From positions 5,264,898 to 5,328,897 of the forward strand of contig OZ199839.1 of NCBI GenBank assembly GCA_964304625.1: a stretch of DNA of 64,000 nucleotides, given 5' to 3'. The position numbers were made by a program, and so were the translations under genes. This document shows positions 14,610-61,873 of the stretch, in pieces. Under the pieces are notes generated by a model. It saw only the letters and a program-made list of their open reading frames with translations. It had not been told where the DNA came from and searched no databases. Every line of letters begins with the position of its first letter. The first letter of the stretch is position 1. This DNA is from Kudoa neothunni (Eukaryota > Animalia > Cnidaria).

Positions 14610-15224
14610 TTTTAACTCAACTCAGTCACGTGGATGTCTTTGAATCGAAATCCTAAGCGCCGTTCCATTTGAAACATTATTTTTTCCACATAATAATAAA
14701 ATTAAAAATAATAAAATGCAATTTTATTTCTTTTTCGATATCAAAAGATTGATACGCAATTAACTATCCACTCTCAACATAACTCACTCTTAACTTGGGG
14801 CAGTTAGTTTTTATTTTCAGTCTTGTTATGTCATTTGTCAATATTATTAATCCAAAATAAATTAATGTATATATTTAAAATTTATTTCACTTAAAGTAAT
14901 TATAGGTAGATACACTATGTATTTATAAAATGTATAAATTTTTTGTTGGTTGGCAAGAGTCCCGCCAACTTTATCCCATTCATCCCTTCCCAAATTACGT
15001 GTGAGAAAAATTTTTACGTACCGACGTAATTGTCATACTCCACGAAATATCTTTTTTAATAAGTTTGAAATCTCCCAAAATTTGAACGAATTCGAAAAAA
15101 TCAAACCGACATGGCAATGAACCTTTTTATGCCGAAATTTTTTGTTTGCAGTCCTAAAACAAAATATTACATACATTCTGTTAGTTATTAGTAGGTAATG
15201 TCGTTTTCGACGTTTATTTCCTAA

Positions 15225-19111: not shown

Positions 19112-21773
19112 ATGGGTAAAAGTGCTAAGATAGCAAGATTGAGAAAGGATAAATATTATCAATTGGCCAAAGAACATGGATATCGTTCAAGAGCAGCTTT
19201 TAAACTAATCCAATTGAATCGAAAGTTTGGTTTTTTGAATGATGCGTCCGTGGTGATTGATTTATGTGCAGCTCCTGGTGGATGGTACCTTATTGTTGAT
19301 TTTGGTTATTTTTAAACATTACTTGTTGAAGGCTACAGGTTGTTGCCAATATTTTACCCATGTCCAGCATAATCATCGGTATGATTAAAAATAGTGTTAT
19401 TGTCGCTCTATATTAGTTACAATCTTATAATCATGGTGAATTTAGGTGTTGATTTATTTCCAATAAAACCCATCAAAAACACAATCACCTTCGTCAACGA
19501 TATAACAACACCTGAATGTTTCAGTAATATCAAAGCAAATCTGAGGGAACAACCGGTTGATTGTGTTCTTCATGATGGTGCGCCAAATGTGGGTCAAGCA
19601 TGGGAAGCTGATGCTTTTGGTCAGGCCCAACTTACGTTACACTCTCTTAGAATGGCTTCCAAAGTGTTGAAACCTGGAGGTTGGTTTGTCACTAAAGTAT
19701 AGTCATTTTTATCTCCAACGCCGAAATAACTAACGGACAAATTTAAGATATTTAGATCTCGAGACTATTCAAAATTGATAACGGTTTTGAAAAAATTATT
19801 TCGACATGTCCATTCCACTAAACCGTTAGCATCTAGGAAAGAGTCAGCAGAAATTTTTGTAGTTTGTCAAGTGAGTATTTTGTTTGATTAAAGAGGTTGA
19901 ATTTTATTTATTGATAGGGATATACTGGATTAAAAAGCTTTGATTCTTCCATTTTGGATTTTAAAAATGTTTTTCGTGAACAGGACGATGCAACGGATTC
20001 CACCAAGTCACTCACCCTGAAATCTATGTTTAGACAGTTGGTAGGTTATTTTTACTTTTCTTAAACTAACTAATAATTTAATTCTGCGCTTTGTTAGAAC
20101 AAAGCCAAACCCAATCGAGATGGTTACGAAACAGAGTCTCAGTTATTGTACTCAACTCTAAAACTATCGGAATTTTTAAAGCTTGAATCCAACGTTTTAA
20201 ATGTTTTGTCGAAAGTCAATAAAATTCAGTTTGACGTTGATACCTATGATTCGCCAGATGTGACTCCTGACTGTATTCGGTTGTATTGTGAAGATCTCCA
20301 AGTGTTGGGCTATCCCGAGTTTAAACAGTTGTTGGATTGGAGACGGGGGATTCGCGCCAAATATGAATTGGATGAGAAAAATACGGTCGAACTCGAAGAA
20401 ACCTCAAAGCAACCATTAACGGATGAACAAAGAATCGAGAAAGAAATCGAAATGGCTGAATTGGATCAGCATCAACTGGACAAACGTCTCAAGAAAAAGG
20501 AGCTAGCCAAGAAAAGATTACTGAAACAACATATGAAAATCAACGAAACAATGAATGCTCAAAACAACATCGACCTCGATAACACTGGTTACTTTGCTCA
20601 ATTTGTGAATAGAAACTCCAATAATGATTCATCGTTGGCAGTTCATGATAATGTTGATATTGATGCGACAGCGGATGATGTGAATGATTTATTGGATGCT
20701 TCAGAAAATTTATCTGACAAGGAACAGCCTTTTGATTCCGATGTGAGTGAAGACGAGCGTGAATTTACTACGCTTGAGCGGCAATTAAATTCTCAGATGG
20801 AATTTTTGAAGAATGCTGGCCTTAACAAGAAAAAGCAAAAACATTCACAATTGTCTGATCAACTTTCAACCGCCAACGTAAATTTTTGTGAATATCTTAG
20901 TTCGTGTTGTGCAACTTTTGATGTATTTAATAGTCGAAAGAGATTGAGATGGACTCTGCTGTGAACGTTGGTGGTGGTTGTAGCTTGTCGGATATCGACG
21001 AAGATGAAGAGTTAGACATGGAATTTTTAGCGGAATCAACTCAACAATCACGCTCTGAACCGCCTTCATTTAGTAACGCGACTGCTGAAGCTTCTTCGAC
21101 TGAGGAAAAGTTTCAAGATGAAGATAGTGATGACAGTCATTCCTCTGAGTTGGAAGATGACAACAAATACTCTCCTGAATTGCTGGCTCTGGCGACGCGC
21201 ATGAAGCGCTCAAAAAAGGAGAAAGAACGCATTATTGACAGTTTATGGAATCGTCATTGCAAAGGGGAAGAAAATTTACCACAATGGTTCATTGATGATG
21301 AAGCCAAAGCCACTCATCGAATACTTCCAGTGACCAAAGAGGAGGTTCAACAATACAGACAAATGCAACGTATTATGGATGCTCAGCCGAGAAAGAAAGT
21401 GTTGGAAGCTCGTCAACGTAAACGAACAAAGATAGAGAAACTTATTCAGAAAGCTCGTGCTAAAACCGACAAACTTTCAAACACTGAGGATGATCAAGGT
21501 GATGCTGCAATTAATCAAGATAAAATCGATACCGTCAAACGTATCTACAAGAAAGTGGCGAGAGAAATGAATCCCAAAAAGGACAAAACTTATGTGGTTG
21601 CGAAACGTCATCTTGTTTCTGGCCGTCGTTATGTAAAACCTAAAGCCGTTTCTGGGCCTTATAAAGTGGTTGATGCACGTCAGAAAAAAGATAAGCAAAA
21701 AGCCAACTCCCATATGTCTAGGAAAGCCGGAAAAACCAAACGCAAGCGATTTGTTAAGAGAAAGCGCCGTTAG
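19112..21773 (+). CDS. FTSJ3: pre-rRNA 2'-O-ribose methyltransferase FTSJ3/Spb1, 7 exons
   Basis: [70 protein letters not shown] and Spb1 C-terminal LPQWFIDDE / [13 protein letters not shown]. Exons 19112-19284, 19332-19378, 19446-19696, 19748-19870, 19918-20040, 20098-20877 and 20934-21773, all GT-AG and frame-consistent. Confidence 0.97.
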
Positions 21774-21990
21774 GTTTCAACTTTGCTTTGTAGTTAGCTA
21801 TAGTGTTTGATTGTGTATGCGTTTTTATATATTTTATATGCGTTCGTTTTTTTGTTTATTCTTATTGAAAAATTTTTTATTCATCCCGTCGGTTTGATGT
21901 TATAATTTTCTAATATTCCTATAGTTAATGTATTCATGAAAGGTCTTATTTTTCTGATATAAATTTGATGAATAAGATAAGAAATATCGC

Positions 21991-22014
21991 ATATATATAT
22001 ATATATATATATAT
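21991..22014. repeat. (AT)n microsatellite
   Basis: 12 consecutive AT units. Confidence 0.95.
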
Positions 22015-23206
22015 GTATATGTATGTATTTTCAAAAAAATCTTTATTTAAGTAGTTGAACAATTTTACAGTTTATATTTATCAGATTGTTCATTATAAAC
22101 GTTTATCGTAAGTAGTTGATGGGATAATCTGGTGATTTAGGAGGAAGTGTATTGAATGATTATTTAAAAAAATATGAGATAATTCTTTTACAAAATAAAT
22201 TAGAAAGTGCTCAAATAAGAGTGTAGTAAGAATCATTTAATAGTTTAATCGAGAAAATACTATAATTTTGTTTTTGAGACCTAATTGAAATTATGAATGC
22301 TTATTCTTATAAATTGATTTAATTTTAACGTGTTGATTTTATTGAATTTAAAAGAATAAAAACTTAAATATATTTGAATTTAAGGGTGAAGTGTGTTTTT
22401 ATGCTTTTTTGATTTTTTTCGCGTAATTATTTAATAAAATAATAGATTAAAAATATTAAAATTTTGAATTTTTATTTTGTTAAATGTTAATAACAAAAAC
22501 TTTGTGCTTTGAATTACTAGGAACAACTGGCTATATACATCAAATATTCCATAAATCAACAAATAATATTCACGTTATATAATCAAACTCGTCCTGTTCT
22601 CATTTAATCTCCAAAAGTTTGTGATTAAATAAAATCATTGTATTTTAGAAAATAAATAGAAACTTTATTATTTGGTTATCTATTACTTCACAACGAATGA
22701 TTTCTCAAAGACAGAATGATATTCATCCCATATCTCCATACAAATTGATAGGACTTATTCAAAAAAACGTAAAGAAATAGTCAATTCTAGTTCATTTTTA
22801 GGCCAGCTTCATCGAAAAATTACTCTTTTTTTAGCGAGGATATTTTGTTGAATAATATTTAAAATCAATAAATATTAAATGTAAAATTAGCTTTTATTTT
22901 TGTGTGGTAGTAAGGGAGTAAAATATATAGGGAATCACTGATCTTAATGATTCAACTAACTCATAGTTCTTATAGGAGAAATAAAATTCTCCATTCAAGA
23001 TTTTCGATCTTATTAAACTGCGAAACAATCAAAAAAAATATTCTACAAATAGAGAAGTTAAATATTTATTCAGATTTATCGATGCTGTGTAAATATTTCT
23101 CAGTTATCCACAGATTTGAATTAATATAGTAATAAACGAGAAATTAATAAATTTCAGAAAATAAACAGAATTTTAATTTTTTTATAAATCTAGATTTTTT
23201 TCTTAA

Positions 23207-31020: not shown

Positions 31021-31137
31021 TGTAACGGATGACACGCGTCAACCGGATTTAGATTAGTGATATCTAGGTAGATTACTTTTCGAGTATATTTTATCATGGC
31101 TTCTCCTATCGACAGCGCAACTAACTCCACCGTTACA
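31021..31137 (+). repeat. 5' LTR (117 bp)
   Basis: Direct repeat of 34815-34931 with 8-bp terminal inverted repeats; contains the gag ATG at 31096. Confidence 0.97.
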
Positions 31138-34100
31138 TCTGGTGACAGGGGTGTTGACTCTGTTAAGCCACCGCCACTCAAGAAATTTACCGGCGCCGCC
31201 GATAACTTCGCCAAGTTCCACCGCTCTTTTATGCTCCTTGCACTAGCTAGCAACTGGAATGACCTGGACAAAGCTAGGAATTTTCCCTTGTACCTCGGAG
31301 ATACCATCCTCGATTTGATCGAGACCAACGGTATAAATATGTACCGACCAACGAGGGATACATTCAACCTTATGGTGGAGCTGTTAAATAATACATATCG
31401 CCCTATCACTTCTTCCGCATTGTCCCTTCAATCGTTCTACAGTTCGACGTGGGACAATGTCACCCCCTTTGCTGAATTCTGCTTCGGAGTGAACAATTTG
31501 CTTCGCAAGGCCCTACCCTCTATCGACGAAGACACCGCTAGAACTCTAGTTATGGACCAATGCACGAAGTCGTTGCCTGAGTACATCAAACGTATTATCG
31601 TTGCTTCGAAACCCCAAGCACTTCCTGAGCTGATCCAATCGGTTGAGGAACAGCTAAATATTCCAAATCACACTGCAGCAGCCTCGTACGGCGAGAGGAA
31701 ATCCAAATACAAGAAACGATCTTGCAAAAAATGTGGCTCAAATAATCACTCAACCAAAGAGTGCAAAGGTTTTGCAATATGTAAAACCTGCCACAAGAGG
31801 GGACACCTCTCATATATATGCAATAGCAAACATACAAATAACATTAACTGTATCAATTTTAATGAATCTGTTTCGGATGAGGCCAATTATTCGTGTTTTG
31901 TTTCTTCAGCGCAGTTTGACTTGTCTAAAAATTTTACAATACCAATTGAAATCGGAACTAGAGTTGCAACTGCTCTGATTGACACTGGATCTTCCATATC
32001 AATTATAAGACACGGCTACGATGTGGAAATGCACCCTGACAAAATTAGTCTTACATCCGCAGGCGGGAAGCAAATGGAAACCATTGGTACTAGCATCGTC
32101 GAATTCTCTCTAAATGGAAAGGTCTTCAAATGGAGAATGGTTGTATGTCATAATCTGGTAACAGATTGCATCCTTGGTCGCGATTTTTTGTCTGCACATG
32201 CTGCCCTCATCACCTGCCAGAATGGTTCCATAACACTCCCTGCAGTACGTGGGAATACATGTTCAATCGCCCCGAAACAGGATCACGCAAAAGTTCCTCC
32301 ATACTGTTTCAAATTCGCCGATAACCCCTTTCACATCTCCACCAGGAAAATCCCTTTCGCCCTCTCCCCAATTTTTAAGGAGCAGATAGATAATATGCTC
32401 AACGATGGTGTAATACGTAAAAGTAACAGTCCGTATTCATCCCCAGTGCTCCTCGTCAAGAAGCGCAACAATGAATATAGATTCTGTGTAGACTATCGGA
32501 AACTCAACTCTCAGATAGTTTCGGAACAATTCCCCATACCATTACTCCATGACATTATCTCCACCCTCTCTTCTGCCACCTACTTTTCAAAAATCGACCT
32601 CAAATCCGGATTCTGGCAGATACCACTCCACGAGAATTGTAAATATGCGACCGCTTTCTCCACTCCCTTTGGCCACTACGAATTTAATGTGTTGCCATTT
32701 GGTTTGGTAACAGCCCCATCTGCATTCCAAAGAGCCATGACCGAAACTTTGAATGACTACATTGGGAAATTCTGTCACGTTTACCTTGACGATATCCTAA
32801 TCTATTCCTCCTCTTCTAACGAGCACGATGAACATCTCAAATTAATCATGAAGCGTCTCACAGAATTCAACTGGAAACCCAACACAAAAAAATGCATTTA
32901 TAAGGTAACGTCAATCAAATATCTCGGCTTCGTAATCTCAAAAGATGGAATCACACCTGATCCTGATAGAATCAAATCAGTAGCTGACATACCCATTCCC
33001 AATACACCCAAACGCCTCCAATCATTCATTGGCTTCGCAAACTATTACCGCGACCTAATTCCAAACTTTGCTAGCATAGCACAGCCCCTCTACAATGCCA
33101 TTTCTACAAAACCCTTTGAATTATCCACCGAAGCTATTAATCGAATAAGTAACATCAAACATTTGTTAACATCCTCGCCACTACTCAGTCTTCCTAACCT
33201 GAATAAAAATTTCACAATTTCCACCGACGCTTCAGACACAGCCATCGCATCAGTACTCTATCAGGAAGTGAATGGCAAGAAACATGTCATACGTTATGCC
33301 AGCCGTATCCTCAATAAATCCGAAATTAATTATTCCACCTTCGAAAAAGAAGCACTAGCGCTAGTACATGCACTCAAAACATTTCACCAATATGTCTACG
33401 GCAAAAGAACCAAAGTATGGACGGATCACAACCCCCTAACTCACCTGAAAACCATCAAAGACTCTCACGGTAGAATATCCCGTTGGCTGCTATTTCTCCA
33501 GAACTACGACCTAGAAATAGTCTACAAACGTGGCCCTGATAATGTAGACGCCGACTTTTTATCGAGAACACCGTGCGAATCAAATGCTATATCAGTCCAT
33601 TTCCTATCCCTACCAGTAGACAAGTGGATATCGGCCCAAAAAGAGGACATAACTATATCGAGCATCGCAAAATCCATTGAACAAAATAAATACAAAGGTA
33701 AGAGAGTTTACCGATTCAAAGATGGCCTCTTGGTGAGGACTCTGAAAGCCGAAAATAGAGAAATCAATCAACTTTTCATCCCACTTCAAATGCGCGCTAA
33801 AATCTTGGACAGATTTCATGATCAATCTGGCCATCCCGGGTTCTTCAAAACATTTTCGATGCTACGAGACAACGCATTTTGGCCCGGCTACGAAATCGAA
33901 ACCCGAAATTATGTGCGTTCTTGTAAAACTTGCCAATTGAATCCATGGTCTTCCGAAAAATCCAACTTAATCCCACTAAAAGCTACCTTCCCTTTTCAAT
34001 TAATGGAATGGGATATCATTGGACCTTTCAATCGCACCGATAATCTTAATAGATATATACTCTGCTGTGTGGATCTTTTCACCAAATTCGCCATAGCCAT

Positions 34101-34851
34101 TCCACTAGCTGATTTAAGAGCAGAGACAATTTGTGACAAACTCATCCAGGAAATATTATGCAAATTCGGTAAGCCTAGACGTATACACAGCGACAATGGT
34201 AGGAACTTCGTTTCAAATATTATCGTACAAATCTGCCGTGATCTCAACATCGAGCTATCCCATACTACACCATACCATCCTCAGGGCAATGGCGCCGTGG
34301 AGCGTTTCAACCGAACTCTTAAGCATATGCTACTGAAGCTCGACGAACCCAATTTATGGGACATCCATCTCCAAATGTTAGTGAACCATTATAATAATCA
34401 TACCAATGAATCAACTGGTTTTTCTCCCTTTCAACTTATCTACGGTAAAAAACCCAACTTTGCTCTCACACCCATTCTGCCCAATGATAACATGAACAAT
34501 TCTCCTACCACTCTGTCATACCTAAAAAATCTCAAACGTGAACTTTCACGCACACATGCAATTGCACTCAAAAGCCTAACCAATTCATCATCCAAAAACT
34601 CAAGAAACTACAACAATGCAAGTCCTCCTAAACCCATCCAAGTCCAATCTAGTGTTGTTTACAAAAACCCAGCTACCAATAAGTGGTCAGGACCTTACGT
34701 AGTCCTTAAAAGACATGGACCCTCCACTTATACAATTAGTATTGACAATCTCCCAACTACTGTCCACAGAAACAACATCAAATCATATATGTCCCGATCT
34801 TCCCAAGGGGGGAATGTAACGGATGACACGCGTCAACCGGATTTAGATTAG
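31096..34851 (+). CDS. Gag-Pol polyprotein, 1251 aa
   Basis: Two CCHC knuckles (CKKCGSNNHSTKEC, CKTCHKRGHLSYIC), protease LIDTGS..ILGRDFL, RT YLDD, RNase H TDASD/EKEALA/TDH/DFLSR, integrase HHCC plus WDIIGP/SDNG/VERFN, and a GPY motif. No chromodomain or env. Confidence 0.97.
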   Translation: MASPIDSATNSTVTSGDRGVDSVKPPPLKKFTGAADNFAKFHRSFMLLALASNWNDLDKARNFPLYLGDTILDLIETNGINMYRPTRDTFNLMVELLNNTYRPITSSALSLQSFYSSTWDNVTPFAEFCFGVNNLLRKALPSIDEDTARTLVMDQCTKSLPEYIKRIIVASKPQALPELIQSVEEQLNIPNHTAAASYGERKSKYKKRSCKKCGSNNHSTKECKGFAICKTCHKRGHLSYICNSKHTNNINCINFNESVSDEANYSCFVSSAQFDLSKNFTIPIEIGTRVATALIDTGSSISIIRHGYDVEMHPDKISLTSAGGKQMETIGTSIVEFSLNGKVFKWRMVVCHNLVTDCILGRDFLSAHAALITCQNGSITLPAVRGNTCSIAPKQDHAKVPPYCFKFADNPFHISTRKIPFALSPIFKEQIDNMLNDGVIRKSNSPYSSPVLLVKKRNNEYRFCVDYRKLNSQIVSEQFPIPLLHDIISTLSSATYFSKIDLKSGFWQIPLHENCKYATAFSTPFGHYEFNVLPFGLVTAPSAFQRAMTETLNDYIGKFCHVYLDDILIYSSSSNEHDEHLKLIMKRLTEFNWKPNTKKCIYKVTSIKYLGFVISKDGITPDPDRIKSVADIPIPNTPKRLQSFIGFANYYRDLIPNFASIAQPLYNAISTKPFELSTEAINRISNIKHLLTSSPLLSLPNLNKNFTISTDASDTAIASVLYQEVNGKKHVIRYASRILNKSEINYSTFEKEALALVHALKTFHQYVYGKRTKVWTDHNPLTHLKTIKDSHGRISRWLLFLQNYDLEIVYKRGPDNVDADFLSRTPCESNAISVHFLSLPVDKWISAQKEDITISSIAKSIEQNKYKGKRVYRFKDGLLVRTLKAENREINQLFIPLQMRAKILDRFHDQSGHPGFFKTFSMLRDNAFWPGYEIETRNYVRSCKTCQLNPWSSEKSNLIPLKATFPFQLMEWDIIGPFNRTDNLNRYILCCVDLFTKFAIAIPLADLRAETICDKLIQEILCKFGKPRRIHSDNGRNFVSNIIVQICRDLNIELSHTTPYHPQGNGAVERFNRTLKHMLLKLDEPNLWDIHLQMLVNHYNNHTNESTGFSPFQLIYGKKPNFALTPILPNDNMNNSPTTLSYLKNLKRELSRTHAIALKSLTNSSSKNSRNYNNASPPKPIQVQSSVVYKNPATNKWSGPYVVLKRHGPSTYTISIDNLPTTVHRNNIKSYMSRSSQGGNVTDDTRQPDLD
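31140..31153 (+). promoter_or_regulatory. Primer-binding site, probably tRNA-Leu
   Basis: TGGTGACAGGGGTG lies 2 nt after the 5' LTR. Its complement CACCCCTGTCACCA resembles the eukaryotic tRNA-Leu 3' end CACCGCTGCCACCA. Confidence 0.75.
34805..34814 (+). promoter_or_regulatory. Polypurine tract
   Basis: AAGGGGGGAA directly abuts the 3' LTR. Confidence 0.85.
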
Positions 34852-40344: not shown

Positions 40345-43300
40345 TCAACTAAATAACTTTCCCAAATTACTCACGGCTGTATCCTGACCGATCAACGGCT
40401 GGTTATTTTCCCTTTCTGCAATCGGAATTGAATCTAAATGTTTCTTTTGGTTTTCAGCATTTTCCAATCCGTAAGTTGTAATATTGATAGTGCTTTTATT
40501 CATTGTTTCATTTTTGGTGCTGGGGTTCGAGTAAGTGACTGTTCCTAAATTAGGATTAGTAAATTGGGTCGTAATTGATTGATCACCCTTAGAAATTGTA
40601 TGACTTCTTGAAACAGTAATTGTTTTATAGATTGGGAATGAAACACTGACACTAACATTAATTTGATTATCCAAGTAGAGTCGGTTTTGATTGACGTCTT
40701 CAGCAATGAACGTAATCACCGCCGAAAGTGGGATATAGAGATCTATTGTGCCAATACTTTGTGAAGGAAACATAGTTGTAATGTTAAGGATTCCGTCCAA
40801 ACTTTTAATGATTATATCCCCGTCAATACTGTTATAGAATTTGACAGTTAGATGGTAAAGTTGGGGATAATTCCAGAGCAAAATATCGGGGACAATTTGA
40901 CTTTTTGAAGATGAAATATTGGAATTTATATTTCCCATAAGAGAATTAAAGTGATTGATCCAATCTTGACCTTTAAAAATTATTAAAACGGTTGATATCA
41001 ACAAATAAATACCTAATTCATGGATCACAACCGGGAGAGTAGATCCAGTTAGGTTGTTGATCTCTCCGAGTTTCCATTCGGCGAGGCCGTTAATTAGAAT
41101 TGTTTTTTCCATTTCACCATCTCGCGCCGATGCTGTAAACATCAATCGATGATCCGAAGTGACGTTAACTCCAAGTTGTAAATCGGTGGCTACGTTATGT
41201 TTTTCTACCTCGGATTTCATACCCACTTTAAAATTTGTTCCTGTGATCTCACGTAATACCACATCAAGTGGTGTCATCAATTTGATTCTCAACGTCAAAT
41301 CGTAAAATGATTTGGTTTTATTATCGATAGGTAAGGCGATAGATGCATTATATGATTTTACTTGATTTTGAATTTCAACCAAATTGTTGTATACTTCTTC
41401 CCAGCTGGGGTCATCTAGAGAAATAAATATTATCAGTAATTAGGATCAACTTCCGCACCTTTTCTGTGAATAACTGCTACTCTAGCCACTTTGGGGATAT
41501 TAGTATCGGTCAAATTTTGAATATTACCAGTAATGTCAAACGTCGTGCGATTATTAATTAAGTAGGTTTGATTGGTGGGGCTGGATGGCGAGAAAATTAT
41601 AGATTTTGGGGGCTGTGTATTTTCTATCTTTATTTTGACTATTTCGTTCGAATTGATAATAAAATCAATCATAACATCGTTTTTGTCGAGTATTTTAACA
41701 TTTTCATCTACCAAATTAGCCATAATCACTTCTATTTTTTTCTTCGAATTGACTTCATAATCGGGTTGTACACCGTACAATTTATGTAACAATACATTTT
41801 TTGGTCTTTTCCAATCAGTTTCTATTAAAAGTCACAAGAATAAAATACAAATGTTTATTACCTTTGTTATGAAGTATTAGTATAGTTTCATTTGCTCTAG
41901 GTATCGAGTTAATTATCAAAAGAGTGTGACCATTGATGAGCACCCTTTCACCAAGGGTTTTATCCGCGTAATCGCCCTCCAGAGCAACAAGAGCAGTTGG
42001 ATACTGTAAGGCGTGTTTGGGTTTCCATATGACTGTAGCATAAGGTCCAACCTTGAATGAATTGGCTACGTCATACACTTTGATTATGGTAACATTTTTA
42101 GGAGATGAATTTTTCAGAATAAAATAGACAGGATGTGGCTGTTGAGTTGTGTTATTTTTATTAGTTAAATCTGTTGGCGTTTTCACAATTTTAGTTTCTG
42201 ACACCAAGCACGATTTCAAATCGTCATTCCAAGCTGAGTTTGTAGGGCATCTTTCTCGCCTAGCAATACCCTCTTGACAACTGATAAATTTAGTCTTATC
42301 ATTTGGATCAGGGAATAACCCTTCTTTCTTTGGACAGAACACTAATAGCTTAATCAGAAATTTACAAATGATATTTAAAGTTACATGGTGTTGTTATAAT
42401 CACGTTAGTGACTATTGATTGATCTTCTTCAGCATTTACCACAATCGACCAATCATTGTTCAGCAGGTATTCTTTGTCTGAAGTGAGACCAAAAGCTTTA
42501 AAGACAATCGGATAAGTTGTGACAACTCCTTTCTCTTCTAATCTCAACTCAAGAATCAATCCTGCATTTATGAGATATCCTTCCGAATGATGTTCTCCTC
42601 GATCAGGTTTGATAAGAATATCTTGTCCAGCTCTATTTTGGAAATTGACACTGATAAACCGAGTGCTTGATGGACTCTTATCTATAAAATGACTCAAACA
42701 ACATTTTCCAATCACAATGTCTTACTGTGGTTGTTATAAAACAAAAAGTAGTCCATCAGCTCATTTTCATTATAAGCGAGCTCGCTCAACGCAAGTTGTT
42801 TGATGAAAAATTTACCATAGGTACCTGAACTCTCAACGACGGGTCTTCCAATGATGAATGTAGTATTGCTGTATGATGCGCTACCTTGAAGATCGGATGA
42901 CTTGTCAACCTGTTTGAAATCGTTGCCATTTATCATCATGCTTAGTTTTCCACCATTATGTGGATCCCAAGTCACAGCAACCATAATCCATTCTCCAATG
43001 ATTAAACGAGTTTCAATTTTCCAGACCTTTCTATTCTGCGACACTTCTGCCAACAGTCTTCCTCCCAAGTAGAATAACGAAAAACCTTTACCATTATGTC
43101 CACCAGTGTCGAGAATAAAGTGAGGATTGTTGTCGTCATTCACAACCTCATTCAAACGTATGGTTATGACCAAAGTGAATCCTTTTTCGCAAAACAAAGG
43201 CTGAGTTAAACACTCCAATTCTAGAATCACAATAACTCATCACATTTAATCTATAAAATCTCACCTTTGAATTTATCAATATTAAGGTACGCTGATGCAC

Positions 43301-46300
43301 CGTCAAGGGACAAAGATTGATTGACAGTTGCTGCAGCTTGACTTTCAATCACATTACCAAATACTGTGATTTCAGGTAAAGAATTTTCAACTTTTCTTCC
43401 ATCGGCACTTAGCGACAAAAATCTCCAGAACTGTTGCATTTCCATTATTTTTGCTATATTATGTTATTTTGGTAATCTGTCACAAAAATGCAATTACATG
43501 GAGCTGACAATATAACGTTAAAATATTCGTTGTATTCGTTGTTGTCTAACGAGATCTTGATTGGTGACGGTTGGTTGTTGATATAGAGGGGAGTGTTCAG
43601 TTCTGAATCGGTTGCCGAAATAACCACATATATGCTTTGAGGAATTTGGACATGTTTCTCCTTGAATATTTCGTCGTTTGTCCTATTCATATCAACCAAT
43701 GTGAGTATATCTCCTCGAGTGTTGGCGGGGATTAGAACTTTATTTGGATAGTTTCCATTTGTGCTGACTTCTAATTTGATGGCACGCTCGAGTTGATTGA
43801 ATAATCGTAGCAAATTAAACTGGGCTTTAGCTCGCTCTAAATTAAATTGATATGAAGAAAATGATTATATTTATGAGTAAAATAAATTTTTATTTATATT
43901 AACATTTTATTTTATAACTTCTTCATATATATATATATATATATATATAAATTATAAATAAATCAACAATTTGATACAACAAGATACATGTAAGTTTTAA
44001 AATATACTTGGATCTGACAGTTGTAGGTAGGTCATTGTGGCTTCTTGTTGATTAAAGTATTTGTCGAAAATTGTCAAATAAACCATGATAAATTTGCTGT
44101 AGGTTACACTGTTACCATTGACATTTCTTCCAATCAACAGGTTTGGATTGATATCAAGATCTTGAGTTGAGAAAAGCATTTCTCCATTGTGTTCGGACGA
44201 GACCAATACCCCATCCATATGTAAATAGAGGCCACTTTCTGGTTGCCAAGATGCAATCACGGTAAAAAATTTATCCAGTGGATGTCGTGCGGTGATGAGC
44301 CAAGTTTTGGAGCTGGTAGTTACTTGGAAATGAATTTTGCCACCCTCTGCAGTTAAAGTGACACCCGTTGAGCTACCTCCATGTCCACCGGAGTCAATGA
44401 TGTATTTTCGATTGGCTTGAGTATATTCTGAAGTGGGGATTGCTAACCTCAAGGCTATAGTGAATCCTTTCGAACAGACAGTTGGTTCAATAACACAGTT
44501 GGAGCCGGTCAAATGGATCCCGGCCCAGGACTCGTTCCCACTAAACATCACTCCAATACTTTTATTGTTATTGTCTTTGTAGTCGGATAGAGAACCATGG
44601 ACAACAATCGAGGGTTCATCTTTTATTGTCCCTTCATTATTAAGCCCAAGAAAGACGTATGAAGATTTAGGCAGAGATGGCAAATCTAATGATGAATTAG
44701 AAACTAAAAATAAACCGTGAATATGATACGAGGAGGGGTGATTTTGATATGTGTGGCGGGCCTGTCTTGACTTAGAGTGAATTCGACTTGGCCTAGAGTT
44801 CCATTTAACAAAAGTGGATACTGCGTTAGATTCTCTTGAGCAATCAATATAATGGGTAGCATTGTTTGTTTGTTGACTGAACTTTCCTGATTTATTTCAA
44901 GTATGCCTTTGGGTTCAATGAGGTAGGTTTTATCGTTGACAACAGTTTTAACTGAAAGATCTAATGTGTTATCCAAAAGCAAACTGTAAAGTCTATGTGA
45001 AGTTGTTTCATTGGTGGTTTGGTTGTTCAAATAGTTGGGAATATTTAAATCAATGCTGTCCACTGAGAAGTATATATTCTTCGAATAGGTTGTGTTCAGA
45101 TTTATAGAGTAAATCGCAGTTCCATTTAAAAAGACATTGCGTTGTTGAGTATCATATGTGGTAGCTTTAAAAGATATAGAATCACTTTCGAATGGTTGAT
45201 TCACCACATAGTTAACATCCTCCTTGATATTGAGGCTGGAATTTGGTTCAATGTAAGCCTGACCCCTTGTAGTATTTTCACCCATCCCAGCAAACCATTC
45301 AATTATTACAGCTTGTTGCAACTTGTTTTTCACTATCACTTGATCAAAGTTGTGTTTTGGGTTGGACACTAAAAACAAATCAATATAAATTAAAAATATC
45401 TCAAATTGAATACTTTTTCCAACATTGGCGATGACATTCGTTGTGAAATTGAATTTTAAATATGTTTGATTATTTATCAAATAAAGGTTGCCAAAGTTGT
45501 CAAAAATAGTAAGAGTTTTTTGGCCGAAACAATTGGCGCCACAACCAATAAGAATTGGTTGATTGCTCTGGGGTTTGATAACAGAAAAATGTTCGTAGAA
45601 TTGGTCGTATTGGTGATTTACAAACAAAAACAAGGTGGAGTTATTTGTTGTGGGGCTAAATCGAACCGTTGCAGTGTAGTTGATGTATGAAGTAGGGAGA
45701 TTGGTAAAATTTTCGTCTTGGACTGTTCCAATGACACCACCCACCGACATAACTATCCATTTTATATCATTCAACGATTCGGTCATGGATTTTTGGATAG
45801 TCTTGGAGGATATTACAACTTTTTTCAGTTTGTTATTGATAGACCACAATTCTTTGTTGCTGTTGGTGTTGGTTGCCCAAATAGTGATGGGTTTGGTATC
45901 CATTCTAGACAATCTCATCACCAAGTCGATTTGATTTTCATTGAAGAAAGAAGCATTTTTCTTTTCATTTTTGTACTCCCAATAGAAGTTGATGTTTGGT
46001 CTTTGATATATGTTGGCTAATCTTATTCCAAAGTAATGAGTTGTGGCTAAGATCAACATAAAGGGATAAAAGTTATTGAATATAAATTACGCTTATTTCC
46101 AAGGTGAAGTAGAATTTTGGTATTATTTTCTAATGGTTTAATCCCAAATCTATAGGTACCATTGACGGTAACAGGAACCCCGCCTACAGTGGTTGTAGCT
46201 TTTGCTACAATGATTTCACTGGAGTAGGACTTGGTGTAGTTGTATGTGAGAGAGGAGTATGGTTCAATATTGACACTTTCGTAGTAGGAATTGTTCCAAT

Positions 46301-49300
46301 TTAGGTATAGCGTAACTTTTTCAGTCGGAAGGAAGTTGTATACTTTGATTTCGGTGTTTATCGACTCCACATATTCTTCGTAGTTTTGGGGTTGGGATTC
46401 GGTTGAGGAAATCAAAAGCGTATTGGTATAATTGGATGTTTTCTCTAACGAAGCGATAATATGTGAGCTGTTTCGACCATTAATAAATAGATCGTTTTCG
46501 TAGTAGGCATCGTAAGCTTTTACAGCAAACACTGGCAAAGTTATTGGCGATTTTATGCGGTAATGAATTCGAACTTCATTGCCAGGAGTTACCAATGGCT
46601 CTGGTAAACCCACTCTCCACTCTACCGTAGCTGGACTTTCACCAACATTTGTTATTTTGAGGTTGAGATTGTAAATTGGATAGTCACTTTTGTAATTGTA
46701 ACTCAGAATACGCGACACAGGCACATATTCAATGAAAGTGTTATTGTTTAGGAATGGCAACGTTGTATATTGCTTCCAGATGCCATCTGGAACTTTCTTT
46801 AGCATCAATTTAATGGGATCACTTATGTAGTCATTAGGCAATATAATTTTTCGATAGAACGATATAAGATTCGTAGGGTCAAGAATCAGAGTTTTTTGAG
46901 GCAACAATTGGTGGTCAATTTTAAGCTGAATACTTTCAGTAGGATTCATATTGGCCACAATAAAATTGAGGTATTGTTTGTGTTCGATCTGGTAATCTAA
47001 ATGTGTGTCAATAACATTTAATATGATACGGTCGCAGAAGTAAAAATACTTGACATATTTCTTGAAATAAAAAGAATAACATATTCGAATTGTGAGGTAC
47101 TGAGCTTGACAATGTGTTCTTTCAGGCCATTCATGTAGAGAGGAGATTGTTTGGAGCGAGCTTTGACAATTATCGGAGACGGTCTATTATTTAGAGAGAC
47201 GAACGAATATTTTAAGGTTTTTTTGGTGAGATTTCCTGGAATTTCTTCCAACGAACTGAGAAGTGTGCCGTCTTTGGTAAACGAAACAAATGCTGTCACA
47301 TTTTCCTGATTGATCACTGTGATTTGGGCGTAGAATCTTTTCATGGCATTAGTTTTTGCTAAATAATCCATCTATTAAGCAAGAACTATTCCAATTAACA
47401 ATTACCATGTCCAATGTGTATCTTAAGAGTTTTCTTAATAAGATCCAACTGAAGAGTCAAATGTTTTGAATCACGCAATATCATTGGTTTTCCAGTGTGT
47501 AAGTTTTTTGCGCTCAATGAAATAACTCCAGAGTTCACAATATCGGCATTATTGATTGAGATAACTCTACTTGAGTTTTGATTGACAACAATGTTGCCAC
47601 GTTGCCATGTTTGGTTGGATTCTAGAAGTATTTCCCAATTGACCAATACCACACTATCAACATCGTTCACAAGAGTGATGTTGATTGGGTTGAATTCCAG
47701 GTTGGAGTAATTTAAAAATCTGGATTGGTTAGTCTCATGAAATACTTCATCCGCACAAACTTTGGTTTCAAAATTGGATGCTATCAAAATTTCTCCACAT
47801 TCCATTCCTCCATTTTTAGGGGGTGGATTATTACAGAAACGACTCCTCGATTTAATTGTTTGAGGTTTTGTTTGATTAGCACTTTCTGTAGCCGTTCTAT
47901 CTATGTAGCATTCACTCCATTCGCTCCATTCCGAATATCCACCGTGAACTATTTCCAATGCAACTCAATTAAAAATGTTACCATTAACTAACTGTTTACT
48001 TTCAGGTGGGCAAACACTTTCGCCTCCAATCGAGTATATTATATTTGATATCTTTCAAATCATTCTCGAAGTCGTCGTAACTTTTTTTGGAAGTAAGTAC
48101 GAGATCAATAACTGGTGAATTTTCAGATTCGTAACAGACAAATGGTGCTTGTTTTTCTCCGTTGATATCAATATCACACATGGAATCGTAAAACCTTCCA
48201 TGCACACAAGAATAGATAGATATGTTACGAATTATCGAAGAGATATTTGAGACGTAGTTAAAGGTTAGTTGAATTAATCGACTTTGGTTATTTTTGAGTG
48301 TTGCCATCAACGAATCATCCCTCCAAAATACATCCACGGTATATGGAAGTGTGTTGTATACGTTAAGGATTGAATGGCATGTGTGATATGAATTGTCGCC
48401 ATAGTTAGAGTTAGAGCTAGAAACATAACTGAAATTTGTTTTTTCAGTAATAGAAAGTATATTGGTGGCATTTAAACTTGAAATCATCGGCTCTATATAG
48501 TAGGCAGGAGAGTTTTCAATATATAATGGAGTTCCATGGTTGTTAGAGTTGGAAGCAACGGCGACAAAGTCTATTTTTCGAGTAGCATAGAATCTTGTTT
48601 TCCAATTCTCATAACCGTGAGCTATCAAATATTGGACAGGGGTGGTTTCAAGAAAATTCACCGTAACATTTACAGCATAATCCAATGTATTGAATAAAAT
48701 GTAGTCGTAATCAAAATCTCTTATTGGTGGTTTCTCTTTATTGTGATCTATGCTCTCATTATAAACAATTTTTTAACAATAAACCATCTCACCTGGTTGA
48801 GAAATAATCATAATGACAAAATCATTAGGAACGTATGAGATTGGAGACTCAAACGACAAACGACCATTCACAAAAAGTTGTTTTAGAGAGTTTTTCTCAA
48901 ATGCTTTGAATCCAATCGATAGTGGCATCGATATAGAATGAATCACATTGAATAATGTTGAACGATTGTGTGCCCTCACTTCAAACGCTTTCTTTTCCTC
49001 CCCCATATCATAATACACTATGATATCATCGTTTAGGGGGTTAATAATTTCAGCGTTCAAATAATATTGTTCTATTTCGGTTTGGTTCATCTCATCAAAC
49101 ACATCAACGTTTCTGGTGTAGTTTTTGAACTTGTAACGTATCCATAACGAGACACCGAAAATTAAATCAAAATTGGTTGCTTTGTACGGTTCTAGAAGAC
49201 CGCTGGTGCTAGCCAGTGTGCCGTAGGGGTCACTTTTGGGGTCTAGCGAGGTAGTCACGAATAAATCACTTCCATCATTGAGAACATAAGGAATTCTTTG

Positions 49301-52300
49301 GTTAATGTTGCTTTCGTTATTCCAATCACCAAATTTCTCGTGTAAAACAATTTTGGAGGAGTTGTTTTCGTTGTTGTCGGTAAAATTCCAAATTCCTCCC
49401 TCCATATAGTCACCCTTGTTTACAACAATCATGTATTGTTTTTCAATGAGAGAGACATCAGATGTAAACTCGATAAATCTGCCGATAACAGAAAAGGAGG
49501 AATTCAGACCAGGAATGTTGGCGTTTCTGTAATTTATTAATATTACAAACTATTGATATAATCGTCAAAATATTAAATATAATTATTATTTTATTCTGTA
49601 CTATTTAATTTTAATTAAGAATAAAAGTTTGAAGGCGTTGAAAATATTATGTTTATAGTTTATCAATTTTGTTATTTTTTACGACCTACTTCTAAATGAT
49701 TGCCCCTTGGTTAATAGTTTGAAAAATTAATGCAAATACTTTTATGGTTATTTTTGCTAATTATTAAAAGTCTAACTAATCCGAAAAGTATATTCAAACT
49801 ATTTTTAAAGATTATATAGAAACTTCATTAAAAATATAAGAAAAATATATCTAAAAATAATTTGTGTCTTTATATCTGATATGATAAAATTCGTAATTTT
49901 AATATTAGAATATAAATAATACTTTGCGGGAAAACAAATAGATTTGAGTATCATTTGGTTGGAACATTTATTGATGTGATATTTAAGTTCAGTATTTATT
50001 ATTATAATTTGAGATATTACAGTTATATTAATTATTTAAAAAAAAATACATATTCTTATATAGATATATTCACAAATTATCCACAAAATTTAATCGTTTT
50101 ATACTGGTAATAAAATTGTCTCATTTTTGCATATTTTCGAGCATAGAAACCAGATAAAGAGTGTAACAGTCATATAATCAACATTTTTATTTTCTTTATC
50201 ATTTTAGGTCTCGGATATTTAATTAATTAAATAATGATAAATTATTTTATATTAAGTTAATCCTTTGAATACTGACTTTTTTCAACTACTTATAAGTATC
50301 TCCTTAAAAACTTTGTCCGCATCTATATACTCACTCTTCATAAATAATTTAATATTTAAGCTTTATATTTTCAAGCGCAAAGTTTAATTTATTAACCAAA
50401 TAATCTCAATATTCTAATTCGATTGATTTTGATAAAGTCGGGCATGGGTGAGCAAATAACCACAAATTTAAATGAGCTCTAATTTTTAACACTTAGGAAA
50501 TTAATTAAATCTAATAAAAATTGTTTAGATTTAAAAAAAACTGTAAGTATTCAAAATATCAGCGCATGTCCTAGATGCGCGTGCGTAGTTTAAAAATATT
50601 CGATAAAAATCCCCATGTTACAATCTTCGTCAAAATTACTTCTACTTGAATTTTATCAAAAATTCGAAAAAAATATTTGATAATTTTAAAATCAACGTTT
50701 TTTGAAATATGTCTATTTTATTAAGTCAAATAAAAGTCTTCTTCCAGCAGGAAAATAAAATTCAATCAGTTTTTAAATATTACACTTTACTACGTCTCAA
50801 CTGAATGCGCTAAATTATATTTTTTGAAGCTAGCATACAAATAAAACATTACTTTTTAGATATTAAATTTTTTGAATCAATTAAAAAGTTTGTTATTAAC
50901 AATGTGATAATTAAAATTTTATTTTAATTTTACAATTATTTTGTGAGAATGCGCTTGTATATAATAGATATTCCAGCTCATGTCGTCATACTGAGTTTAA
51001 CTGAATAAATATTGCATTATATTTTGATTGACAAAATAAACCATTAAAAATGTGAAGAATATTTAAAAACACTTTTTTATTCGAATAATCTTAATTTTAA
51101 GAGTTGGAAGATGATATAAATTAATAATACTATTTTTAAATAAACTAAGATAAAATAACTTTAATGTTAGCAGTTTATACGAAATATTACCCAAAATTAA
51201 TATATTTATTATTAAATATTAATACAATTATCTCAAAAAAAACAGTGTTAGTTTTATATTTTCAAATAAATTAATATAGAAAGTTTATTGTGATTCGCAT
51301 ATCAATATCCGTGGAGGATATACTATGCATCACTTAATATAAGTTGGATTAATATTTTTTACGTAAGCAACGTAAATATATTTCTTCTTTAAATGTTAAG
51401 TGGTATTATGATCAAATAAAAACTGGTTGAGATGTTTAATTTAAATAATTTAAGTGAGTAAAATACCTTTCTAAAACCTGAGCACTGGACCAACCGTCAC
51501 CATTGATACTGTTGAACACAAGTTCCCATCCGCCTCCACCAGTGTTCATATCACAATAAACATTCGACTTGGATATTGTTGAATTGTCCGTGATAAAGTC
51601 GGTACCATCCGAATTTAATGCGGTAATTGCTTCATAAATTCCGGTTCTATGTCGAGAACAGCGACTTTTATATTCAAAACAGGACCTTATGGGATAAAGG
51701 GGAACTTTGGTGATATCTTATTAAATAAATTCGAATTATAATCAAATAAATTAATAGCCTAATACTTTTGGAGGATGTTTGATTGGCAGAGGGTTCGGTG
51801 TTGTTAGCATTTATAGGTGGTGGACAGTTATCGTTACATTTAGTATTCGAAACGTTTGCGAATGTATTAATTGTATCAGAACATTTTTGGAAAAGTTCGT
51901 TTATCGAAGTATGTGTGAGTATCTCGCTGTAGACGAACAATTCATCGAGATAAGTGCGATCATTTTGCTGATTCTTGTTCTTGTTGATCAAGTTTCCAAC
52001 TGTTATTTCTTTGATAGGAATAAGTTGTTGATTAGGAGTTTGATGCATTGAGCACGATTTTTTTATATCGCCGTCTTGGTAGAGTTTTATTTTACCCGCA
52101 ATCGAATCAAAAGTGATGACTATATGAGTCCAGTAGTTGTGAGTAGATTGATTATTTAATTCATCGGAACAGGTTATGGTTTGATTAACTGAAAAAATGT
52201 TTGCGTACATCTGATTGTTTTTCAGGTAGAATAGGGGACTGGGTTCGTTGTGTTGGTTCCTAGCCCATAACACGTTAACGGGCTGATTCGGTGTTAGTGA

Positions 52301-54741
52301 AACGCTATTTGGATCATTGTACACCCAAAATGCTAGTGTTAATTGTTTTCGTTGCTTCCCTGCTATTGTGCGGGAAGCTGTGGGCAGTTGTTTGCTGATA
52401 GGATCGGACAAATCATGAGCTTCTCCACAATAAATGTCATCGCTGTATATATGGTCTCGTTTGCTAACATTATTTAATTGATACTTATTAAAACTCAGAT
52501 GGAGTAACGGCTTGTGTAGACTGAAATTGTCGTCCGAGCTTGATACTACACAAATATCATTAATATCATTAACTGAGAATAAATTCAACCAACAAAAATC
52601 ATTACTTCCATAAGCATGAGTTATAATCAAGGAATTATTGATAATACCAATATTACCAAAGCTTTTATGAGTTTGAAAAAACTCAAACAATGGTTTGAAT
52701 GGGTCCTCTAGTTCTTTTTTTAATAAAATCGCCAAGTCAATTACGATTATGCTAGTTTCATTTTGATTTTCGGTCTTGGTTCGAGCTAGACAATCTCTCC
52801 AATCCAATAAGGAGTCCATGATTTGACCATCGTAGGTTTTGTTTAGCTAATGTTAGGAGTGAAAATATCGACAAAGTCAAAACATTACCTCTACCATTAA
52901 ATTATTGGTTTCATTCATAACCCAACCGTCATCAGTTGTATTCTCGGTGCTATTGGTAGCCAACCCGAAGCTCACCATAAATAATTTGCAGGGACAATTT
53001 TCTAATCGAATAGGCTAAAACTTTTTCAACTCTATAACTACAAATTACGTTCAGGACAGCCTTGTTTGTTCGGCCCAACGGCTTCCATAATCTCATCGTA
53101 ACAACAACCATACGTTGAATCCTTGCAATTGATCGACATTGGAATGTCCATTCGACTACAGATGTCCATTAGTTTATCTTGATCTCCACCTTAAAAATCA
53201 AAGTTGAAGTTTTTCTATGGAAATCTGTTACTTTTTAAATTCTCCAACTTCCATGACTCGGACAACACTACCACAGGCGCCATTCTATGGTTGTGGGTTT
53301 CTTCAATGAGGGGTGTCAAAGGATTGACGTCCTCATTATGTTCAACAATTATACGAGCACTTGTGAGATTTAATGGGATAATTTCGTCTGGTTTAGGACT
53401 ATTTAAATAGAATAATAATCGACTTTTTTTGTTCAAATAAATCAAATACGTGATATCTAAGAAAGTAGCGTTGTAACTTTCATGCTGGTTATAAATTTCC
53501 CGTATCTATTCCGATTCGGTCACAATTCAGGTATCAAAACAACAAGCTACTTTGTTTTTTATATCCTTAATAAGTTCGAATTGATGCTCTGAGTCGAACT
53601 GAGCATCCCAAATCTGAACAATAGTAAAACTGATGAGTGTGGTAACTTTGTTATTTTTGGTTGCTGTGGCAGTAGTGTAAACAGAAGGGGGAGTTGTGAC
53701 CGAAGTATCGCTTCTGTTCACAACATCATTGGAAGTGGATTCCCTGTTTGGTTCAGTGTTCACACTGGTAATAAAGTTATCTTTGTAATAAACTAAATTT
53801 TCTATAAAACTTGCATCAAACAGCTTTGGCTACCTTCACACAAGGAAGCACAATGGTCGTACGAGGAAAAAAACACATCAACACCATCATTGCAAAAAGA
53901 ATGGATAAATAACTCGCATTCTTGAGTTGTTCGGTTGAAGTAGTATTTTCTCACCGTTTGGTTGCATGATGGTTCATTGTAGGCTTGAGGCAGCGCTTCA
54001 CACATTGTGATTGGAATCGCTAAAATCCACCCATAAATAAATCATGACCGGTAAGTTTTCAAATCATTACTTTGATTTGCTGGTGAGTTTCCCGATTTCT
54101 CGTCGGAAGGCATAATAGTTGCTGTTGGTTGTTGATGTAATCCGAAATAAGGATTCGAGTCTCGCCATAATGGCAGTGGTGTTGTAGGTGCGGTTGTTGT
54201 GGACCACTCATATTCATATGTAGATTGATTATAGTTTGGGGCGGTTTGGATAGAACTCGTTATAGTCTCGTTAATTTCATTTGTTTTCGAATGTTGATAA
54301 TCATTGTTAAAAACTTGGCCGTAATTCGAGGCAAGATAGTTATAGGTGTTATTTTCGCCTTGATTCATTGGAGTATTGTAGTAATAACTAAAATTTTAAG
54401 TTTTAGATAACTAAGCTCCGCAGTCCATAGTAACTTGTTTCCAAATGGAACCGAAGTAGAATTGTTATCTAAATAGTAGTAGTTGTAGAGGGAACCGTTG
54501 GTGGGGTGTTGCTGTGGTGGGTAGTTGTAGGTAATTGTTGGATATATTGTGTAATTGGTAGTTACATTTTCTCCATTGTAAATAGGATAATCTATTCGAT
54601 ATCATGTTATATCAGTGAATACTTTTCAACTCAACGATAACCTTGATTGAAGAGGGTTTGTTGCGGTAATGCTATACCACAAATAGCCAAAATTATCAAC
54701 GCGGAACGAAGTAGCAATTTCTGGGTTTGGATTTTCACCAT
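40345..54741 (-). CDS. Giant secreted mosaic glycoprotein (~3,700 aa, ~28 exons): Kunitz, SEA-like, lagrin, LamG-like x3, fibrinogen/intelectin-like, TSP1, chitin-binding and ~18 unassigned repeats
   Basis: Signal peptide MVKIQTQKLLLRSALIILAICGIA (ATG at 54741). Consecutive minus-strand ORFs join through frame-consistent GT-AG introns at the junctions checked (mostly 40-55 nt; one of 1,940 nt at 49527-51466). Motifs: 6-Cys Kunitz (~53834-54005), CKDSTYGCC..AVGPNKQGC, WTHIVITFD..LYQDG, VYCDMNTGGGGWELV, HGGYSEWSEWSEC..RSRFCNNPPPKNGG and FCPKKEGLFPDPND..CPTNSAWN. The exact 3' end is uncertain. Confidence 0.85.
43925..43949. repeat. (AT)n microsatellite within an intron
   Basis: About 12 AT units in the ~170-nt intron at ~43837-44006. 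Confidence 0.9.
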
Positions 54742-60897: not shown

Positions 60898-61873
60898 TTA
60901 GGATCCACGTGAGAAAATGATATAATATTCTCTAATTTTATCGAATCCAGAAATCACACCAGCACCAGCGACTCCACGCAATATATTGGCCCCAGCGCCT
61001 TTCATAAGCACATTGGTACCTTCATTTTTGACAATGTGTGTAAAGCAATCGAGACTATTTTTGTATTTGACTGCATTTCCAGAAGTCATCATCATTCGTC
61101 TTCGCACAGTGTCAATCGGATAGCTGCACAGGCCAGAAACAACAGTAACCAAATAGGCCAAACCAAAGGCGACTCTAAAATCGATACTGTCCTTCATGAG
61201 GATTGGTCTTGCGGTGTCATATAAACCAAAATAGAGACCACGATAGATGGCAATGCCAACACATGAGATAATAAATCCGCGATACAGCCCAGCAATGCCA
61301 TCAGAGGCCAATGTCTTTTTGTAAACATCAACGATTCCATTGAATTGTCGTTCGCCTCCTTTTGCAGATTTGGCGTCATTTGCAAGACGTGTTCTCGCAT
61401 AATCCAACGAATACACAAAACATAACGATAAAGATCCAGCAGCACCGCCAGAGGCAATGTTGGTGAAGAGCTTTTTGTTGAATGAGTCGGTGGGTTTGAT
61501 GACAAAAGTCTGTTTGATTTTGCCGTTGAAAGAAAAGTTCAACGCCTGGGTGGGAAAGTAACGAATAACATTGGCCAAATTTCCACGCCAAAAAGGCATC
61601 AAACCCTCGCTCTTAAATGTACGCATAGTACAGTCAATCACACCATTGTACGGCTTGTCCAATCGTCCTTGTTTGATCATCTCATGTTGGTTTTGGACCA
61701 ACAATTTCACTCGTTCGATTGGTGCAGCAACAGTTTTTGAGATAATCGCAGCGGCACCACTCAGTCCAAAATTCTCCGTAAAAGTTAATCTGCTGTCATC
61801 CTTAAGACTATTACATTGCAATTAAATAGATAACTCCGCGAAAATTTAAAAAAAACCCTTACGACTCGCTCAT
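60898..61873 (-). CDS. ANT: Mitochondrial ADP/ATP carrier (ANT/AAC, SLC25), 2 exons
   Basis: [38 protein letters not shown] and the signature RRRMMM. The 11-nt first coding exon ATGAGCGAGTC (61873-61863) is followed by a 55-nt intron at 61808-61862. Confidence 0.97.

Follow-up and report, generated by a model that had tools for sequence, protein, structure and literature searches.

What is encoded by a gene that joins a Kunitz domain, laminin G-like domains, a fibrinogen-related domain and a chitin-binding module in one giant reading frame, and what might its product do for a myxosporean parasite? The question is raised by positions 40345-54741, minus strand, of a 64,000-nucleotide stretch of Kudoa neothunni DNA (contig OZ199839.1, positions 5,264,898 to 5,328,897; herein referred to as the window), which a preliminary description, made from the letters alone, had read as a secreted mosaic protein and a candidate wall, capsule or adhesive component. 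We find that this gene is conserved as a single copy across the myxosporeans Kudoa, Thelohanellus, Henneguya and Myxobolus, that its protein is known to databases yet uncharacterized and misnamed, and that the domain dominating it, a repeat herein referred to as R, is undescribed. We hypothesize, with confidence somewhat better than even, that the protein serves outside the cell, in the spore stage, as a scaffold whose long spacer of R domains carries modules for binding glycans and proteins.

Gene structure and continuity across the long intron

The gene was assembled by joining minus-strand open reading frames (ORFs) separated by short gaps through GT-AG introns chosen for frame continuity. 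Searches of the window were run exon by exon or with the identifiers of orthologs, whereas the joined sequence served to establish reading frame and length, hydropathy and where the repeats begin and end. The resulting model has 27 exons and 26 introns (about 3,731 codons plus stop), and its frame is open from the ATG at 54741 to the stop at 40345-40347, its 11.2 kb of coding sequence being free of stop codons. Every one of the 26 introns is of the GT-AG type; 24 of them measure 40-53 nucleotides (nt), with single outliers of 171 and 1,940 nt, and GC content is 0.37 in exons versus 0.23 in introns. Phase 1 predominates (21 of the 26 introns), as expected for shuffled extracellular modules.

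The 1,940-nt intron (49527-51466) is the place where the model could most readily be challenged, either as a false fusion of neighboring genes (two or more) or as a decaying pseudogene. The intron is about 40 times the usual length, RNA support from Kudoa neothunni is lacking and another splice junction, 48015/47964, is atypical, all of which would be in keeping with a faulty join. However, the orthologous locus of Thelohanellus kitauei carries an uninterrupted ORF of 1,759 codons (L001:3636-8915) that covers the junction, matching the Kudoa exons on either side of the intron five residues apart, and the same point is crossed by a related protein (P0054), by HZS_5153 of Henneguya salminicola and by a transcript of Myxobolus honghuensis. 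The spliced model is also free of stops throughout, and the long intron contains nothing else, with no ORF of note, Rfam match or tandem repeat found in it. Taken with the collinearity of the orthologs described below, these observations make a misjoined or decaying locus extremely improbable, and the reading as one gene, which the preliminary description would have seen refuted by a break at this intron, holds as far as DNA alone allows. Separately, the idea that the long intron is a transposon copy was ruled out; its only match in the genome is itself.

Within long exons, three more stretches that keep the frame (53449-53399, 45413-45369 and 41012-40971) are short, very AT-rich and bounded by GT..AG, and are likely introns. 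The last of them encodes the sole internal hydrophobic stretch of the protein; it is treated here as an intron because the ORF of a close relative (75% identical) aligns exactly to its donor and then ends. With this likely intron removed, hydropathy detects no transmembrane segment in the final model, and the 19-residue average exceeds 1.8 only at the signal peptide. The spliced model contains 44 Cys and 98 N-x-S/T sequons, so that the gene product is predicted to be a secreted, heavily N-glycosylated protein of ~3,730 residues, which bears out the preliminary view of a secreted protein rich in sequons and devoid of membrane segments.

Two introns call for comment in their own right. The extra length of the 171-nt intron (window 43837-44007) comes from an (AT)n microsatellite together with AT-rich filler. 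The junction 48015/47964 looks atypical as it stands (GTTTGC..TTGAG), and a DNA contig obtained independently (run X1, depth 4) departs from the window at 48034-48035, 48622, 50533, 51234 and 52597 through small indels and a single substitution. Its TA insertion after 48034 would shift the exon end and give a typical junction instead (GTAAAC..AAATAG, 51 nt, phase 1), so that at 48034 the window may have an error of 2 bp or represent an allele; an AGG insertion after 48622 in the same contig is in frame.

The R repeat

An iterated hidden Markov model (HMM) applied to the gene model delimits 17 clear and two weak copies of R, each of ~97 residues, in the layout 3 / TSP1 / 8-9 / LamG / 1 / LamG / 1 / CBM14 / 4 that the preliminary description had already given. 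Repeats 1-3 occupy 48212-49093 and repeats 4-12 occupy 44749-47715 (eight clear copies and one weak at 46695-47059), both arrays being recovered by the repeat HMM and a genome profile search. Repeat 13 lies at 43508-43834 (repeat HMM); repeat 14, at 42395-42679 (repeat HMM and BLASTP), is the best conserved copy, 58% identical to its T. kitauei counterpart; and repeats 15-18 span 40612-42162 (repeat HMM, genome profile and the relative's ORF), a region that includes the candidate intron 40971-41012. The unit is defined by a strand pattern, h.h.h.N...V.h, and a conserved h-h-I-N-G turn, and its copies are mutually just 11-23% identical.

R corresponds to no Pfam family: even with the threshold relaxed to E<=10, any one family matches at most a single copy of the 16 compared. 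When a profile built from 16 copies was compared with 1.84 billion representative proteins, 66 were found (best E 2e-143), indicating that the R family is real and extends past this gene. Within the 40-Mb genome, all 16 matches of the R profile lie inside this gene. AlphaFold2 (AF2) models R as a 7-strand beta-sandwich with a predicted local distance difference test score (pLDDT) of 89. The model's structural neighbors, of which the pVHL beta-domain ranks best (Z 8.6) alongside luminal domains, TssJ and C2, are within background, and a family assignment by fold was rejected, the matches being to generic beta-sandwiches (best Foldseek E against the PDB 8e-4, to pVHL; template-modeling scores up to 0.73 in the Atlas). 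Pfam matches of the proteins P0001, P0002 and P0003 (to TetR_C_8, CSDE1, AHSA1 and similar) were likewise set aside, as none has an individually significant stretch and they represent noise summed over repeats.

The only named non-myxozoan holder of R that we found is XP_057306681.1 of Hydractinia symbiolongicarpus, a protein of 7,499 residues with 32 R-type domains. It resembles the Kudoa protein in placing R in a giant, in this case with the VWA and FN3 domains typical of extracellular matrix, but its build is different (VWA, alternating FN3 and R, tandem R, VWA), and since it has no Kunitz, LamG, fibrinogen-related, TSP1 or CBM14 domain it is not an ortholog. R domains also occur in giant metagenomic genes adjoining ORFs with VWA domains. 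In one such contig (L004, from an ENA metagenome), VWA-domain ORFs at 18-716 and 6796-7470 lie upstream of a 13-kb ORF (10001-23113) for a 4,370-residue protein, predicted to be secreted and consisting nearly entirely of R domains, an arrangement that echoes the VWA/R build of Hydractinia. The presence of R in the Hydractinia VWA/FN3 giant and beside metagenomic VWA ORFs points to an extracellular-matrix context, and R is an undescribed repeat domain common to this protein and to giant matrix-type proteins of free-living hydrozoans.

Other modules and their conservation across Myxosporea

Beyond R, the domain order set out in the preliminary description agrees with that obtained from Pfam, BLASTP, phmmer and the repeat HMM, with the exception of two SEA-like calls. 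The protein begins with a start codon and a predicted signal peptide of about 25 residues (54667-54741; hydropathy and sequence reading), followed in exons 2-3 by a low-complexity region rich in Tyr, Asn and Thr (54071-54591), apparent in the translation and without a Pfam match.

The Kunitz domain (53834-54017; PF00014, E 7e-7, 29.7 bits, cut-off 21) is supported by the alignment of orthologs, in which its six Cys align in three species given a donor at 53833; ending the exon at 53834, with this donor and not one at 53839, is needed to retain the sixth Cys. Its P1 residue is Asn both in Kudoa, where it lies within an N-Q-T sequon and is predicted to be glycosylatable, and in T. kitauei; Henneguya has Tyr. 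Compared with the Kunitz inhibitors of MEROPS family I2, the six-Cys fold is present, whereas the basic P1 (Lys/Arg) and the small secreted protein are not, and a P1 other than Lys or Arg suggests that this is not a trypsin-type inhibitor. Orthologs are deposited under a Kunitz-inhibitor name or as hypothetical proteins, and that name implies that the protein is secreted as a Kunitz-type inhibitor of serine proteases or as a venom-like toxin. Such a function has in its favor that all six Cys of the fold are there; it is, however, very unlikely, in that the domain makes up ~55 of 3,731 residues and its P1 (Asn, Asn and Tyr in Kudoa, T. kitauei and Henneguya) is never Lys or Arg. The name itself is a product of automatic best-hit transfer, and is misleading.

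Downstream of the Kunitz domain, a single papilin-type lagrin repeat (53050-53187; C..YGCC.D....A.GP...GC) is 58% identical to that of T. kitauei. The 25-residue units of papilin and MIG-6 have been termed lagrin repeats (bioRxiv 10.1101/2025.02.10.637428). By BLASTP the exon matches more than 10 successive units of this kind in Anopheles papilin (best E 2e-7; E 4e-10 for the T. kitauei copy), so that the earlier recognition of this repeat was correct. The same cannot be said of the two regions called SEA-like on either side of it, 53232-53792 (which holds the candidate intron 53399-53449) and 52352-52846: neither has a Pfam match at E<=10, and for the second a search of Atlas language-model features returned a best score of 0.77, below the useful level.

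The first LamG domain (51902-52351) matches PF13385 (Laminin_G_3, Concanavalin A-like clan) at E 3.1e-9 (37.6 bits, cut-off 27.6). It is followed by a probable fibrinogen-related domain (FReD) of intelectin-like type (49094-51714), which is the domain split by the 1,940-nt intron and is assigned from Pfam, PDB profile matches and Atlas features. Its N-terminal subdomain matches PF00147 above the curated cut-off (E 3.4e-5), and a profile of the orthologs matches angiopoietin-2, fibrinogen beta, Xenopus XEEL and intelectin-1 in the PDB over the first 40-60 residues only. Language-model features of the whole 249-residue domain score 0.96 to cnidarian FReD clusters and 0.95 to intelectin, with 22 of 30 matches in the intelectin set; a full FReD has A, B and P subdomains over some 220-280 residues, and past its first ~60 residues the Kudoa domain seems to have diverged beyond sequence recognition.

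Between R repeats 3 and 4 lies a TSP1 repeat (47782-47949) with the motif WSEWSEC, which phmmer relates to the solved repeats of thrombospondin-1 (E 1.2e-4); Pfam TSP_1 scores 13.2 bits in Kudoa, below the cut-off, versus 26.5 bits, above it, in the Henneguya ortholog. LamG domain 2 (44009-44683) has no direct Pfam match and is recognized by its 29% identity to LamG 3 (E 1e-20) and 36% identity to T. kitauei, and LamG 3 (42727-43451, two exons) matches PF13385 at E 7.6e-8 (33.1 bits, cut-off 27.6). The CBM_14 (peritrophin-A) module at 42196-42336 is well above its cut-off (PF01607, E 1.6e-9, 38.1 bits against 22.1). It is a variant that keeps four of the six Cys, consistently in four species, with the aromatic residues of the alignment conserved as well. 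The C-terminal tail and stop (40345-40611; translation and hydropathy) follow the last R array; the tail is not hydrophobic and hence offers no glycosylphosphatidylinositol (GPI)-type signal.

Kunitz, lagrin and TSP1 together are the module set of papilin and MIG-6, and LamG is typical of basement-membrane proteins, raising the possibility of a papilin-like pericellular matrix protein that acts between the parasite's own cells (plasmodium, sporoblast) and is not a component of the spore wall. Indeed, papilin, lacunin and MIG-6 (ADAMTS-like) are likewise secreted giant glycoproteins combining these three modules. Unlike papilin, however, the Kudoa protein lacks the papilin cassette (TSR, ADAMTS Cys-rich region, spacer), Ig and PLAC, for which no exon and no full-length ortholog gave a Pfam match; it carries one Kunitz domain and one lagrin repeat where papilin has arrays; and it adds LamG, R, CBM14 and FReD, all of them foreign to papilin. 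We consider a papilin-like role distinctly unlikely, albeit a serious rival to a scaffold of the spore stage. Agrin and perlecan offer a similar partial likeness, being secreted matrix proteins of large size that combine three LamG domains with modules of protease-inhibitor type, and differ in the EGF, follistatin/Kazal, LDLa and Ig domains that are missing here, with SEA unconfirmed.

The same architecture recurs in other myxosporeans. KII67588.1 of T. kitauei shows the Pfam domains of the Kudoa protein in unchanged order, and exon-by-exon BLASTP is collinear from the Kunitz domain through the C-terminal R repeats, with identities of 58% in the lagrin repeat and R14 and 36% in LamG; across the orthologs, identity per exon ranges over 21-58%. 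The shared order is Kunitz, lagrin, LamG, FReD, R, TSP1, R, LamG, R, LamG, R, CBM14, R, and it is found again in HZS_5153 (4,331 residues) of Henneguya salminicola, whereas MXB_3998 and MXB_4000 of Myxobolus squamalis are pieces of one orthologous gene on a single contig. The search for orthologs that the preliminary description had called for thus yielded collinear counterparts in Thelohanellus, Henneguya and Myxobolus. Its statement that no described protein has this combination stands in that no characterized family matches, but not in that orthologs from all three of these genera had already been deposited. In the literature searched we found no direct study of this protein or its orthologs beyond the automatic name; a full-text search returned no paper on KII67588 of T. 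kitauei, and the supplements of PMC8773148 do not contain its identifiers.

Gene structure is less constant than domain order. The T. kitauei ortholog has ~3 interruptions (ORFs of 1,759, 191, 1,450 and 395 codons within L001:3001-15159) versus 26 introns in Kudoa, so that intron density in the same gene differs greatly between two myxosporeans. Regarding the surroundings of the gene, a mitochondrial-carrier gene (PF00153, E 5e-63) lies on the same strand ~6 kb upstream (60898-61821, minus strand), and HZS_5153 begins with a Mito_carr domain fused to the ortholog. The neighborhood therefore seems to be conserved across Myxosporea, and HZS_5153 is probably two merged genes. On the other side, a 1,251-residue ORF is present on the plus strand at 31096-34851, ~5.5 kb downstream of the 3' end of the gene.

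Possible roles of the protein in the spore

Evidence on the life stage comes from Myxobolus honghuensis, whose ortholog 26099_MH_MC (1,939 residues, with Kunitz, PF13385, fibrinogen subdomain and TSP1) was identified by mass spectrometry in isolated nematocysts, that is, polar capsules, with 2, 5 and 2 peptides in three replicates and low intensity-based absolute quantification (iBAQ) values (Guo et al. 2022, PMC8773148 Dataset S1). In addition, CBM14 genes are up-regulated while Sphaerospora molnari forms spores (PMC11792419) and the shell valves of T. kitauei are damaged by bacterial chitinase (PMC3242780).

As to possible ligands, the CBM_14 module resembles those of peritrophins and other CBM14 proteins in exceeding the Pfam cut-off for peritrophin-A, and differs in having four Cys where they have six; similarly, the intelectin-like FReD recalls FReD lectins (intelectin, ficolin, FIBCD1), but here one FReD and one CBM14 are set in a scaffold of 3,731 residues. 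CBM14 proteins and FReD lectins in other animals bind glycans of the N-acetylglucosamine (GlcNAc) type or microbial glycans. In the scaffold that we propose, the 17-19 beta-sandwich R domains would form a long spacer, which would display the lagrin repeat, the three LamG domains, the intelectin-like FReD, the TSP1 repeat and the 4-Cys CBM14, and in this way the protein would connect glycans with proteins in an extracellular spore-stage structure, namely the polar-capsule or valve fraction. Observed are the gene structure, the set of domains, the secretion signal, the conservation, the single copy and the occurrence of the M. honghuensis ortholog in isolated polar capsules; we infer from them what the scaffold does, what it binds and where exactly it lies.

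A number of observations weigh against this proposal. The nematocyst proteome is inclusive, its 1,366 proteins counting cytosolic and membrane proteins among them, and the ortholog is of low abundance in it (PMC8773148); given so inclusive a list, detection of 26099_MH_MC demonstrates spore-stage expression rather than localization. The AF2 model of the FReD (from five orthologous rows) has a pLDDT of 49 and is unusable, so that a binding site is not assessable from it. No chitin synthase match (PF03142, PF13632 or PF01644) was obtained in the 40-Mb genome, and chitin synthase has not been found in myxozoans (Vandepas et al., PMC10216261); for T. kitauei, the GT2 "cellulose/chitin synthases" named in its genome paper derive solely from dbCAN (PMC4986447). 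With no chitin synthase detectable, the obvious ligand of CBM14 may not be made by the parasite itself, which weakens the chitin idea. Finally, the gene model is built on DNA: among three metatranscriptomic runs labeled as this species, zero reads fell on 47400-53390, a result that counts as no test of expression, and only DNA contigs matched. As a side observation, the 40-Mb genome contains only two CBM14 loci, the second of which (G000:C3:4936234-4936380, minus strand, 29 bits, in a 95-residue open frame) may belong to another chitin-binding protein.

The apparent lack of a chitin synthase (genome search; PMC10216261) makes a foreign ligand conceivable and so bears on a second serious rival, a host-attachment adhesin on the surface of the spore or parasite, whose CBM14, intelectin-like and LamG modules would bind host glycans (the chitin-containing linings of annelids or the mucosal glycans of fish). 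Lectin-type modules are indeed present and conserved, and the protein is long, secreted and free of membrane segments, like many adhesins; however, it has neither a transmembrane segment nor a GPI-type tail to serve as a surface anchor, the M. honghuensis ortholog came from the inside of sonicated spores, and R domains elsewhere sit in proteins of extracellular-matrix build (VWA/FN3). We regard attachment as unlikely. The function offered in the preliminary description, a cross-linker of chitin in the valve or capsule or else an adhesin, may be plausible: the polar-capsule proteome of M. honghuensis and the effect of chitinase on T. kitauei valves speak for it, and the undetected chitin synthase speaks against it.

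A bolder version of the scaffold hypothesis is that R constitutes a new extracellular domain family of the cnidarian lineage and that the protein is the main organizer of the hardened wall of the myxospore or polar capsule, where it would cross-link a GlcNAc-type polymer either made without a canonical chitin synthase or captured from the host. We hold this to be doubtful, a long shot at present; if true, it would explain a long-standing contradiction, namely that spores stain for chitin although the gene for a synthase is missing.

The naming of these proteins may have consequences of its own. Orthologs carry a Kunitz-inhibitor name together with a protease-inhibitor Gene Ontology term (PMC8773148 Dataset S1 entry 333; PMC4986447), and surveys of myxozoan venoms and proteases may as a result include them with "Kunitz-type toxins" or secreted inhibitors. 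Myxozoan spores are the transmissible and very resistant stage of parasites that harm fisheries and aquaculture, and the composition of their wall and capsules is poorly known. A conserved, single-copy giant protein that bears several glycan-binding modules and occurs in the proteome of a spore organelle is a concrete structural or attachment candidate, and a possible diagnostic or vaccine antigen.

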